Shown here: in pieces, positions 49,769-53,503 of the stretch | Position numbering within the stretch: position 1 is the first letter of the stretch | Layout of the letters: each line of letters opens with the position of its first letter | Origin: Orbicella franksi | Lineage: Eukaryota | DNA length: 64,000 nt | NCBI GenBank assembly: GCA_964199315.1 | Contig: OZ116705.1 | Span: 9,300,001-9,364,000, forward strand | Reading direction: 5' to 3' | Position numbers and translations under genes: made by a program | The notes under the pieces: model-generated | Told to the model about the DNA's origin: nothing | Seen by the model: the letters and a program-made list of their open reading frames with translations, nothing else | Database searches by the model: none

Positions 49769-50208
49769 CGAGCATTGATATAGGAGGACAACCCTTATAA
49801 CAGAGTGAAAACAAAGCAAGATGATCAATTTCTAATTTCTCCCTATAAAGCCAATACACCGCTAAGCAAACGAGTAATAAGAATAAAGATAATCATCAGC
49901 TTCTTATATTACACCGAAAAAAACAACACCAACAGAAATTGTGCGTATTAATGTCAATTGAAAGAATTACTGTCTCAAGCATGAGGCTATTTCTGCTTTC
50001 CGTGTTCAGAATTGTAAAACTTCTCTTTGTTTCTCCGGTTTGTTTTAGTATTGCTCAACACGTGTCACGTGCTACTCAAGCTATTGTTGTTATAGATTCA
50101 CACAGCTAAAAAACAACTTTTTGAGACCACCAGCTTTTATGCATGAATAATTTATTCATTAGCGAGGAAAAGTGTAATCTCATTGACCGTTCTTTTCGAT
50201 ATTCCAAA

Positions 50209-53200
50209 ATGAATCCGTCCGAAGCTAATGTGTTTAGTTCGGGCATCTCGGGTTGTCTGTCTTCGAAAAAGCGCAAGGATGTCTCTTATAGCAGACTCAA
50301 CCAAACGGAAGACGATTCTGTAGAATTTTCCAACGTTCACTTTCCGAAAGATCGCACGTCCCTTTGCGCCAAGCTCTGCTTTAGTTTGTTGGCTTTGATC
50401 TTGTTATTCGCCACTGTGGCCACGGCCGTGTTTATGATGAACTTGAAGAATTTCACGGTGGAAGTTCAATTGGAGAAAGGCAACGTACGGGTGTATAGTT
50501 TTGACCAGGAGATGACGGCAATCACTGGCAACGAGATCACCACAAGAAATACGTCCATTGTTGTCTCTATGCATGTGATTAACAGAACTGAAAGCCATTG
50601 TTGGTTTGGGATAGTTTTGAACTTTCCAGAGGACGCAAAAACTAGTCTTAAATCCAAAGATTACGTTTTTCTTACCCACGTTAGAAGCGCAGAACTTGGT
50701 TACTTTCAAGACGCTCTTCAAAACCATTTTAAAGTTTTTGGAAACCGTAAAACCAGCCACGAGCTTTCATTCTACGTTCATAACGTCTTACACCAACTTC
50801 TTCCCACTATCAAAGTCAAACTCTACGAATTTGTGCTGAGTAAAGTTTCGAGCTCTTCTAGAAAAACTGTGGTGGAAAAACATGGATTTTTGCCTGGGCG
50901 TGTTCATGTTAAACAAACGATGATTACGAAACGTGATATGGTGACTGTCACAGCCCAGGCCGGGCAGGATGACTTCGAGAATTTTTCCAACCTCGAGAAA
51001 GGAAAGTCGACCGAGAAGGCGTCGTGGAAACTAACATACGACGAAACTACTGTTGTGAATAAGGAAACTGGAATGGTAAAAAGGAGTGACATGTCTCTAT
51101 CTTGCAACCTTCCAATCGGCGCTGATTTCACACCAGAGAGCAAATCCAGCCGTCTGGGATTAACTGTGAGATTTCGAAGCGTTGTGAAGTTGCTAGATAA
51201 GTCTCACGCTAAAGTCAAAACTTGGAAGAGTGCGTCACGAGAAGAGAAAGATATCAACTACCTACTCAATCTTCCTAGTGCAAAAGACTCCTCTCTGATG
51301 TATTTTGCGCCACCAAAACACAAATCTAACGAGAGGCTTGCAGAGGAATTAAAAGAGCTTATGAAACTGAGCAAAACCTCTGTTGGCAGATCAACGAAAC
51401 TTCCTTCAATGATAAAGATTATGCATCACAATATTCCAAAGTCGGTTACTGCGCAAAAGTCGGACGCAGATGACGATGATTACGCGAACTTTTATAGTGA
51501 GGACAGTGATGATGGTGACGATAATGATAATGATGATGAAAATGATAACGATGACGATAACAATGGACAATACTGGCCCCAGCCAGATTATGCACCGTTT
51601 GGTATCGGTTATGAAGTGAAACGAAGAAGGTCTGTAGAAACGAAGGGACCACAACACACTAAGAGAAAGAAAACTGTCAGAAATTCACAAATGGAAAAGA
51701 AAACGCCTGAACTGGATGTGATTTGGGATGAACTTGCTTCTTCATCCCCAATGCCCTTGCGCGAGGCTCCCCGTATTATACAGACATCCATCTTTGGGCT
51801 GGATTTCCGGGCGGAGATTGACTACCAGGTTGAAACTAACGACGAAGATGATAATGATGATGACAATGAAGATGATAACGGTGAAGATTGGTCAATAACT
51901 ACTAGTTATCGGGTCACATTTGGACAGTATCGCATGGCGCCATTCACACGAGTTCATACCTTGAAGAAGTTACGGAACAAGTTACCACTCCAAGGAGAAC
52001 GGAAGATCAGTCGGTCGACTATCAACGCTGGAGACTTCGTAAGTCAATACTTGACATGTACTCAGTCTCTTTTTATCCGGTTGGAGGCGATTTAGCTGCA
52101 AGATTAAACGGAGGCCCCATTAGGGCATCAAGCGGGAGGGTCTTATATCCCATTTCCCGTTAATTTTTGGCCTAAATAGCCGTATCTCGTAAATGTCGCT
52201 TACAAAAGCTATCAATTTTCCTACTCGATATCCCGGGAAATCTGTTCTGGAACATCCCTTATCCCATTAATTTTTCTCACATATATCTCTGTCCCTTTAA
52301 TTTTTCACCTAAATTAAATATCCCGTATTCCAAAAACCCCTGAAAGGGCCTCTACACGGCACTAGGAGGGTTCCGGGAAGGGACGCACTCCAGACCTCTA
52401 GCCTCGGTTCGATCAGGGTGCTTCGATCACCAATCGGAAAAAAGAAAACTGGGCACAAATCAAAATCGTCGTCATATTACACGAGGAGGTTAAGAGAATT
52501 TGAAATGCGAAGCTAGTACTAAGGAAATATAGATTATAGAGCAAATTTAACTGAGAATATAACCGCTGCATTTGAAAAAGGAGCTGATTTAAATTTACGA
52601 CTCCTTCACTTTGGGTGTCGCCTTGTTTTCCTTTTTGTTTCAGGTAATGTGCGCTCCCTTGTTCTATATCCAGCGACTGTGTGCAGCCATGCGTTTAACA
52701 TTTGATGTGACAGTCACCCGCAGTTTGCCCCGACTGTCCTTTTCATACCCTGTTGAGATGACTGTCCGTATCGGACAGGCAGTCACTACCAACGCCACTT
52801 TATTCGGGCATGCCTCCACGTGGTTCCATGAGAGTGGATTCTTCACAAAAGGTGATATTTGCTGTCAATATACGCCGTCAGTTCTAATTCAGAATAACCT
52901 TTTAACTCGTTGTTTCATCAAGTGTGCGGGTTTTAAAGAACTATGTTTTTCAGTAATTATTTCTTCATAACATCCGATTTGTTTGAAAGCTGATCAACAG
53001 TGGCCAACATTTTCCACTGCGATGCGTTCATATGAAAGATTAAACACCCTTCAGATTTTTTCTTCACATGCACACATACAATCTTAAAATTGTGGCATGT
53101 TCTGCGGAAAGCCGGCACGATTTTATTTATCCCGAGAATACCAATATTCATGGCTTCCGATATCTCGAGTCCATTTTTGTAACACTTCCATTCTTCCCTT

Positions 53201-53503
53201 GCAGGAACCGTTGCCATAGCAACCCTCCCAGTCAGACTGTCATTTAAAGAGGACACAACACCAGAATGGTGCATCAAGGGTAATCTTGAACAAAAGATGG
53301 TGCGGATAAACACCATACCGCTCTCGTCGTGGAACTGCTCGCTGGATACTACCAGGCTGTCTAACACTTGCAAGGGACTACCGGCTAAAAACACATCTTT
53401 GCTGACCTTTGATCTTCAATATAGTTCAGCTGAAGGCACAATGTTTGACAACTGGCACTACCCTATCGGTTGCACGCATCGAAAGGATTTCTCCGCATAC
53501 TGA
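50209..53503 (+). CDS. Uncharacterised type II single-pass membrane glycoprotein with Asp-rich blocks, about 778 aa (800 aa if started at 50143)
   Basis: Long ORF with donor TTC/GTAAGT after 52038. Exon 2 is 52644-52851 (tttcag acceptor) and exon 3 is 53205-53503 (cccttgcag acceptor); phases are consistent and the stop is TGA at 53501-53503. One hydrophobic segment (about 50374-50439) and several N-x-S/T sequons C-terminal to it. No family recognised. Confidence 0.85.

Follow-up and report, generated by a model that had tools for sequence, protein, structure and literature searches.

A hexacorallian type II membrane protein with a predicted vitellogenin/MTP/apoB-like fold at an Orbicella franksi locus

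Gene structure and transcript

We investigated a stretch of 64 000 nt from the genome of the coral Orbicella franksi (GenBank assembly GCA_964199315.1, contig OZ116705.1, positions 9 300 001 to 9 364 000 of the forward strand), which is referred to as the window throughout and whose own numbering is used for its coordinates. Its plus strand carries a gene of three exons (coding sequence 50209–52038, 52644–52851 and 53205–53503) that encodes a protein of 778 amino acids (aa) and 88 kDa and that NCBI annotation describes only as 'uncharacterized' or 'hypothetical'. An initial annotation made from the sequence alone had taken the product for an orphan type II membrane glycoprotein and a candidate biomineralisation or matrix protein. 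Our analysis supports the topology, places the gene in a family shared by stony corals and sea anemones, and suggests that the protein probably resembles the large lipid transfer proteins (LLTPs), i.e. vitellogenin, MTP and apoB, in its predicted fold. We refer to it as the vitellogenin-like gene. The transcript is built up as follows:

50123–50208, plus strand: 5' untranslated region and approximate transcript start (starts of RNA contigs; an in-frame upstream ATG at 50143 is probably unused)
50209–52038, plus strand: coding exon 1, 610 codons (open reading frame, donor GDF/gtaagt at 52038/52039, RNA joint, full-length orthologues)
52644–52851, plus strand: coding exon 2, 208 nt, ending in phase 1 (DNA reading and RNA; 81% identity to residues 611–679 of the Oculina protein P0012)
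53205–53503, plus strand: coding exon 3 (stop codon at 53501–53503, RNA joint; 80% identity to Oculina P0012)

The open reading frame list contains a plus-strand frame at 50143–52095, and the splicing product stays in frame. GT..AG joints for both introns are present in RNA contigs, one from 52038 to 52644 and one from 52851 to 53205 (runs X1 and X8, where it was reported as 52849 to 53203, the cut being shifted by +2), so that the exon structure implied by the initial annotation is borne out. In the polyA library the exons are covered at depths of 100–425 and the introns at 0–25, and the 3' untranslated region continues beyond 53800. The spliced product matches NCBI models of Oculina patagonica (P0012, 778 aa), Montipora capricornis (P0031) and Stylophora pistillata (P0037) from end to end. 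Because the protein shares 48–97% identity with 36 coral sequences and the RNA depth of its exons lies far above that of its introns, it is a real, expressed coral gene and not a chance open reading frame.

The initial annotation had let the gene begin at 50143. RNA contigs start at 50161 (polyA run X1, with adapter letters before), 50145 (run X2) and 50123 (run X8), and the orthologues all begin at a conserved MNPSEA that corresponds to the ATG at 50209. Since the polyA contig begins at 50161 and all orthologues start with MNPSEA, translation most likely starts at 50209 rather than at 50143. The first exon is CpG-rich, as had been noticed before, with an observed/expected ratio of 1.07 versus 0.63 for the whole window.

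Topology, motifs and composition of the protein

Exon 1 encodes the cytosolic tail, the signal-anchor, the barrel domain, the acidic linker, the cleavage site and the start of the C-terminal sheet; the Cys-containing C-terminal part is completed by the two further exons. Apart from the two beta-rich domains, which are given with the structural model below, we assign the following elements:

50287–50298, plus strand: YSRL, an adaptor-binding sorting motif of the YxxPhi type, within a cytosolic tail of 52–55 aa and followed by EDDSVE
50374–50439, plus strand: single transmembrane signal-anchor, N-terminus cytosolic (Kyte-Doolittle value 2.57, the sole segment above 1.5)
51424–51708, plus strand: disordered linker (predicted local distance difference test, pLDDT, below 50)
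51463–51564, plus strand: Asp/Asn-rich block 1 with embedded Tyr (by composition)
51619–51630, plus strand: multibasic site KRRR/SVE, predicted cut after 51630
51658–51672, plus strand: basic stretch TKRKK
51838–51888, plus strand: Asp-rich block 2, in a hairpin loop of the predicted C-terminal sheet
53252–53500, plus strand: Cys-containing tail (pLDDT below 40; fold unmodelled)

The sorting motif, the membrane span, both acidic blocks and both basic stretches were thus found at the same or matching positions as in the initial annotation. Seven luminal N-x-S/T sequons follow the membrane span, in agreement with the 'at least seven' counted before, and an eighth, NQT, lies in the cytosolic tail. 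The absence of an N-terminal signal peptide, the single hydrophobic span with its more basic flank on the N-terminal side, and the location of all conserved Cys residues and luminal sequons C-terminal of this span indicate a single-pass type II membrane glycoprotein. Six Cys residues in the C-terminal part, two of them from exon 2, are conserved from corals to Nematostella. The whole protein has an isoelectric point (pI) of 7.6 and an Asp content of 7.1%. The chain predicted to arise C-terminal of the cleavage site (residues 475–778) is neutral, with a pI of 7.0, which does not support the earlier expectation that an acidic C-terminal protein is shed. Tyr recurs within the acidic blocks of both corals and anemones, and these blocks may be Tyr-sulfated.

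Orthologues in stony corals and sea anemones

A word-indexed search returned the 36 homologues mentioned above, and all named ones among them are from stony corals; a second word-indexed search with a broad alignment added no new lineage. An exhaustive search of 1.84 billion cluster representatives with a profile of 20 homologues yielded only 46 proteins. Sea anemone orthologues are present in Nematostella vectensis (XP_032232782.2, 998 aa, E = 6.5e-34) and Actinostola sp. (1007 aa, E = 1.5e-53), and two further anemone-like sequences of the orthologue type are among the profile-search hits. As in the corals, the tail, signal-anchor and beta-rich domain of the anemone proteins are followed by an acidic linker, here longer, by a multibasic [RK]RK[KR]R/SLE and by a beta-rich C-terminal part, in which the six Cys residues recur. 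The comparison of calcifying with non-calcifying cnidarians, which the initial annotation had proposed as a check, therefore finds orthologues in both, Nematostella and Actinostola included. Three divergent homologues (P0042, P0043 and P0090) belong to a sister lineage.

Gene order supports the orthology with the anemone genes. In the window, the vitellogenin-like gene is preceded by NAF1 (minus strand, 42387–43766) and RPL34 (plus strand, exon 45288–45374) and followed by an SLCO/OATP gene (plus strand, 56074–58649), and the SLCO neighbour was found again at other coral loci. The Actinostola gene model starts with a fused RPL34 exon (Pfam Ribosomal_L34e); this fusion is likely an annotation error, yet it shows that RPL34 is adjacent in an anemone as well. 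In a maximum-likelihood tree the anemones branch off first, followed by the sister lineage and the stony corals as a pair, and every group has 100% support. Judged by its sequence, the gene is a member of a hexacorallian family of stony corals and sea anemones, and the label 'orphan' does not hold.

One locus of the sister lineage (L010; 7908–9899 and 10256–10900) has its last two exons in one open frame, i.e. it does not contain intron 2, and its acidic block 2 consists of poly-Glu/Asp. The exon of its SLCO neighbour is 74% identical to a coral copy and 65% identical to that of Exaiptasia. The position in the tree suggests that the L010 lineage is a sister group of the stony corals.

Predicted fold and structural matches

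The structural model was calculated with AlphaFold, without templates, for residues 78–778 of the Oculina orthologue P0012, which is 76.4% identical to the protein encoded in the window. The underlying alignment of 59 rows comprised coral, anemone and USOMP-1-like sequences (USOMP-1 is treated below), and the last two exons of seven orthologous loci fetched for this purpose were placed by tblastn. A first run with 20 coral-only sequences had given a pLDDT of 35 and was unusable. The final model has a mean pLDDT of 61 and a predicted template modelling score (pTM) of 0.54, with values of 70–88 in the core and 302 residues at or above 70. Projected onto the window, its two main domains are:

50485–51195, plus strand: predicted beta-barrel of 11 strands round one helix, the latter at 50758–50799 (model residues 16–254, pLDDT mostly 70–88; region homologous to USOMP-1)
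51757–53251, plus strand: predicted C-terminal sheet made of long antiparallel strands, its coding sequence interrupted by both introns (model strands 444–618, pLDDT 65–82)

From the N-terminus onwards, the model shows the barrel with its helix (model residues 109–122), three short helices, about 100 disordered residues that hold acidic block 1 and the multibasic site, a further helix, the sheet of long strands and the Cys tail. The barrel wrapped round a helix is predicted to resemble the N-sheet of LLTPs.

A Foldseek search of the PDB, which the initial annotation had named as a test, returned LLTPs as its top seven matches, namely MTP (6i7s, E = 1.4e-9), lipovitellin (1lsh), apoB100 (9bd8 and 9bd1) and honey-bee vitellogenin (9ens and 9enr). 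These seven have E-values from 1.4e-9 to 3.9e-5, and all other matches lie above 6e-4. A structural alignment independent of Foldseek, run against 48 161 representative chains, placed LLTPs at ranks 1–4: lipovitellin (Z = 17.2; 254 residues, root-mean-square deviation 3.9, model residues 9–599 on chain residues 17–884), bee vitellogenin (Z = 17.2), MTP (Z = 15.5; 344 residues, model residues 14–620 on chain residues 31–822) and apoB (Z = 13.8), while the next fold reached a Z of 9.3. The alignments run from about model residue 5 to about 600–620 and extend to chain residue 822 in MTP, 884 in lipovitellin and 1016 in bee vitellogenin. They span both halves of the model in the order known from LLTPs, i.e. 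the N-sheet first and then the C-sheet with the start of the A-sheet. Among AlphaFold-DB clusters, Foldseek found 'Lipid transport family protein', MTTP and vitellogenin with E-values down to 5.6e-13. A language-model feature search made before any model was available had ranked a Vitellogenin_N cluster second, weakly (0.77). A structure search of the ESM-Atlas gave only unnamed or bacterial clusters with template modelling scores (TM-scores) of 0.24–0.39, two of which carry Vitellogenin_N. The only strong structural matches are thus vitellogenin, lipovitellin, MTP and apoB, and the remark in the initial annotation that the first ectodomain loosely recalls lipid-binding beta-sheet folds proved apt.

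Several observations weigh against a relationship with LLTPs. The Pfam profile Vitellogenin_N (PF01347) does not match the protein or any of the 59 family members at E ≤ 1, a sequence-profile search of the PDB found no LLTP, and a scan of the genome with PF01347 matched other loci (on contigs C14 and C1) but not the vitellogenin-like gene. The evidence for the fold comes from a model of medium confidence for an orthologue with 76% identity, and its last 80 residues are unmodelled. TM-scores are low (0.24–0.38), because the target structures are larger. Finally, the alpha-helical domain of LLTPs, about 300 residues long, has no counterpart in the model; as this domain is part of the architecture of the lipid cavity, such a cavity may not exist here. 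More generally, Pfam searches with the three exon products and the 59 family members gave only low-complexity noise.

In its predicted fold the protein shares with LLTPs the barrel round a helix, followed in the same order by long-stranded sheets that match the C-sheet and the start of the A-sheet. It differs from them in that sequence similarity, the alpha-helical domain, vWD and DUF1943/1944 are not detectable, in its size of about 700 luminal residues, and in its N-terminal transmembrane anchor, whereas LLTPs are secreted. We consider the fold and the family to be well supported. Since the link to LLTPs has no sequence-level support, we call the protein LLTP-like in fold and regard it as probably a very divergent, reduced relative rather than as a demonstrated member.

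The genome also contains canonical Vitellogenin_N genes, at C14:19.89, 20.71 and 22.40 Mb and at C1:23.59 Mb, so that three of these four loci lie within 2.5 Mb on one contig.

Relation to the skeletal protein USOMP-1

USOMP-1 was identified by mass spectrometry in Acropora skeletons (PMC4043741, PMC4890752) and was described as coral-specific and without significant similarity to anything in public databases (PMC4890752). It was matched in the profile search (hmmsearch E = 4.3e-10), and a profile-profile comparison of the orthologue group with the USOMP-1 group gave an hhalign probability of 99.5% (E = 3.7e-23) over 155 columns, which correspond to the central helix and the second half of the barrel. 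In the joint alignment the homology runs on through the dibasic site (LSRSRR/A in A. millepora) into the C-terminal sheet. These profile comparisons make the vitellogenin-like gene a remote paralogue of USOMP-1. The two proteins have in common a short cytosolic tail, a signal-anchor, the barrel, an aligned dibasic site and a beta-rich C-terminal part. They differ in that USOMP-1 has no Asp-rich blocks and, in the three sequences whose tails were compared, neither a YxxPhi nor a di-leucine motif. In the maximum-likelihood tree the USOMP-1-like sequences form a clade of their own (100/100) on a long branch, and the orthologue group of the window gene forms the other clade together with the anemones (100/100), where it has 1:1 anemone orthologues. 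USOMP-1 thereby gains an older relative shared with anemones and a predicted fold of the lipid-transfer type, which makes a role of lipid in the skeletal matrix testable.

USOMP-1-like exons were also found elsewhere in the same genome:

C1:3882944–3883591: USOMP-1-like paralogue exon (L002)
C12:17243748–17244203: USOMP-1-like paralogue exon (L003)
C12:17251906–17252253: USOMP-1-like paralogue exon (L006)
C11:26262939–26263334: USOMP-1-like paralogue exon (L004)

All of these exons encode a dibasic site (RHRSRR, KRRNRR, LQRSRR) together with many sequons. On C12 the two exons lie on opposite strands, separated by 8 kb, and one is interrupted by an internal stop. A Pfam search with three of the paralogue exons gave nothing significant.

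Predicted processing site and sorting signals

The multibasic site is the one short motif that is aligned across the whole family, and it lies in the segment with a pLDDT below 50. In the column of KRRR, orthologues have KRKR, RRKR, RKKR or RKRR, and USOMP-1 has RSRR or RTRR. The initial annotation had placed a furin-type site between the acidic blocks; its position and conservation stand, as it aligns in every family member, but it does not follow the strict furin pattern R-X-K/R-R. Because of the Lys at P4, we regard KRRR/S as a multibasic convertase site of the pattern (K/R)-X-(K/R)-R, and from this luminal motif we infer cleavage by a convertase. No conserved Cys pair bridges the two chains that would result, so that their association, if any, would be non-covalent. 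A prediction of the two-chain complex, made without use of the alignment, gave pLDDT values of 28–30 for the partner fold and hence no evidence either way.

The type II precursors BRI2/ITM2B and ectodysplasin, which are furin-processed and yield small ligands or peptides rather than a sheet of the lipid-transfer type, likewise combine an N-terminal signal-anchor with a luminal multibasic site and with a C-terminal part that is released or kept as a second chain. The likeness is one of arrangement; no relation in sequence or fold is known between these precursors and the protein described here. Among LLTPs, furin-type cleavage inside or beside the module is common: furin cleaves apoLp-II/I at RX(K/R)R, crustacean apoCr is cleaved at an aligned site, and in most insect vitellogenins a convertase site lies in an extended stretch of the early part of the module (PMC1783640). 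The N-sheet of bee vitellogenin leads directly into a polyserine linker that is disordered and phosphorylated and contains protease sites (PMC12214520). The Asp/Asn-rich linker of our protein takes the same topological place as this charged linker of insect vitellogenin, which is polyserine there and poly-Asp/Asn here.

At 51619–51639 the predicted cut is followed by S-V-E, and S-[VLM]-E follows it in all coral and anemone orthologues (KRRR/SVE, RRKR/SME, RKKR/SLV or RKKR/SLE). S-x-E at P1' corresponds to the motif type of the Golgi kinase Fam20C, and USOMP-1 does not share it (RSRR/AVS). A similar arrangement is known from FGF23 (RHTR/SAE), where phosphorylation tunes furin cleavage.

The YxxPhi motif occurs at the same position of the tail in all 15 coral orthologues and in both of those from the sister lineage. 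All four anemone orthologues have an acidic di-leucine signal instead (EELKLL, EEERLL, EEKLL), and the tails of the three USOMP-1 sequences have neither. The retention of one or other of two adaptor-binding signals in the orthologues and their loss in the skeletal paralogue point to endocytic, trans-Golgi network (TGN) or lysosomal trafficking; from what is established for such motifs, the protein would be sorted to endosomes, the TGN or lysosomes.

Proposed function and alternative explanations

The function that we modestly favour is that of a convertase-processed, endosome/TGN-sorted, lipid-binding type II membrane protein with a cut-down LLTP module. The module would lie on the luminal or extracellular side and consist of the 11-stranded barrel round a helix, followed by the long-stranded sheet; a disordered, Asp-rich linker would take the place of the usual alpha-helical domain. 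This linker would be cut by a furin-type proprotein convertase, most likely in the trans-Golgi, into an anchored barrel chain (about 474 aa) and a neutral chain that would comprise about 304 aa and probably three disulfides. The two chains may remain together as a lipid-binding unit or partly separate, comparable to apolipophorin-II/I and insect vitellogenins. The tail signals (YxxPhi in corals, di-leucine in anemones) would let the protein cycle between TGN, surface and endosomes or lysosomes, and lipid could be bound or transferred on the luminal face during this cycling. The acidic blocks with their Tyr residues would serve as charged, flexible spacers round the cut site and not as mineral-binding modules, which parallels the phosphorylated polyserine linker behind the N-sheet of insect vitellogenin. 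The predicted fold would be explained most simply by binding or transfer of lipid on the luminal or extracellular side.

For comparison of the acidic blocks within the family, we counted Asp residues in the most Asp-rich segment of 30 residues of each protein:

Vitellogenin-like gene product: 16
Oculina orthologue: 17
Actinostola orthologue: 15
Nematostella orthologue: 14
Second anemone-like sequence: 16
USOMP-1 (skeletal paralogue): 5

These counts bear on the calcification hypothesis of the initial annotation, by which the protein is a precursor in the calicoblastic membrane that is cut by furin and releases an Asp-rich, Ca2+-binding fragment into the skeletal organic matrix. Its Asp-rich blocks flank a conserved multibasic site, and like CARP4/5, SAARP1/2 and the SAPs it has blocks of consecutive Asp. 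The remote paralogue USOMP-1 is a protein of the skeleton, many proteins of the skeletal matrix are membrane-bound and presumed to shed their ectodomains (PMC4043741), and the high CpG ratio of exon 1 suggests a tissue-restricted rather than a housekeeping gene. In acidic skeletal organic matrix proteins and USOMPs, a structure-prediction survey from 2022 noted 'Asp tongues' that sit on a barrel-like beta region without annotation, and it left the fold unnamed (PMC9673494). However, the orthologues of non-calcifying anemones are equally acidic and their synteny, including the adjacency to RPL34, is conserved, an outcome that the initial annotation itself had named as speaking against a role in biomineralisation. 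USOMP-1, which does reside in the skeleton, has no segment with at least 50% Asp+Glu and no sorting motifs in its tail, and the window gene falls outside its well-supported clade. As the cleavage site lies between the two blocks, acidic block 1 would remain on the anchored chain, and the released chain would be neutral. CARPs, SAARPs and SAPs are secreted, strongly acidic overall and recovered from the skeleton, whereas our protein is signal-anchored, near-neutral in pI and modest in Asp, with acidic blocks that anemones possess as well. The skeletal proteome check gave a limited negative: the 60 skeletal proteins listed in PMC7115838, the one Stylophora list checked, do not include the Stylophora orthologue (PFX32886.1 / XP_022809219.1), whose accessions are not mentioned in the literature full texts searched either. 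Because sea anemones share the gene, acidic blocks included, it is probably not a skeleton-building protein, and we consider the calcification hypothesis improbable; Asp-rich blocks beside a furin site in a coral gene do not alone mark a calcification protein, and a false lead is thus removed. An extracellular-matrix role in corals is possible by way of the remote paralogy with USOMP-1 and counts against our lipid-binding interpretation.

Alternatively, barrel and sheet might bind something other than lipid, and the protein might be a cell-surface receptor, an adhesion protein or a pattern-recognition protein, with cleavage as a maturation step and the acidic linkers as charged spacers or ligand tracts, in analogy to the apoB barrel that binds LDLR and to vitellogenin binding microbial surfaces. 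The same fold evidence would hold in this case: conservation and model quality are both highest in the barrel, the element by which apoB100 binds LDLR (PDB 9bd8), there is no helical domain of the kind that contributes to the lipid cavity, and endocytic tail motifs would suit a cycling receptor. On the other hand, the long-stranded C-terminal sheet that matches the C-sheet and A-sheet of LLTPs is retained and conserved, which is easier to explain if a lipid-facing surface has been kept; moreover, no ligand candidate is known and Pfam detects no known protein-binding domain, so we regard a receptor as rather doubtful. That the match itself is an artefact of a medium-confidence model, and the protein a lineage-specific beta-rich membrane protein of undescribed fold, would agree with the confidence values given above, with the failure of the shallow-alignment model, with the missing sequence-profile link to LLTPs and with the match of generic barrels (autotransporters, LolA, porins) to the N-terminal part at Z = 6–9. 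It is nonetheless unlikely in our view, as all four LLTP representatives of the library occupied the first four ranks among the 48 161 chains, for a model made without templates, with a gap of 4.5 to 8 Z to the next fold, their alignments cover both halves of the model in the right order, Foldseek agrees for AlphaFold-DB and the PDB, and the sequence-embedding search had pointed the same way before a model existed. Over calcification, receptor and artefact we prefer lipid binding, with somewhat better than even confidence.

A broader and tentative scenario, on which we would not rely, is that this gene and USOMP-1 form an unrecognised, hexacoral-specific, membrane-anchored branch of the vitellogenin/MTP/apoB proteins in which the helical domain has disappeared. 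In this scenario the gene described here, as the conserved member, would transport lipid at the luminal side of the membranes of endosomes, lysosomes or possibly symbiosomes; stony corals might have duplicated it, dispensed with its sorting signals and acidic linkers, and recruited its lipid-binding module for the skeletal matrix. Our literature search found no paper on the gene, on its orthologue accessions or on membrane-anchored LLTP-like proteins in cnidarians. A membrane-anchored LLTP module that dispenses with the helical domain would widen the forms of a superfamily central to animal lipid transport, and the tail sorting signals make the protein a candidate for lipid handling in endolysosomal compartments, speculatively including those that house symbionts.

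Further observations at the locus

Two overlapping CACGTG E-boxes lie at 50059–50071, about 60–100 bp 5' of the transcript start; one of them reads GTCACGTG. As neither was found in the 500 bp upstream of the seven orthologous loci, they are probably not a conserved element, and a TFEB/CLEAR-like interpretation of the tandem boxes was ruled out on the same grounds. Intron 1 (52039–52643) has an RNA depth of about 25 in the polyA run compared to 100–425 in exon 1, and in the random-primed run one contig of 950 nt covers exon 1, intron 1 and exon 2 unspliced; the signal could stem from intron retention, pre-mRNA or DNA carry-over. In the 3' flank and untranslated region, 53560–54030 contains GC-rich repeated motifs (GGGTACCCCCGT-like) with overlapping open reading frames on both strands. 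The RNA word depth of run X1 rises to 174 at 53699–53800, which suggests a dispersed repeat that is expressed from many places.

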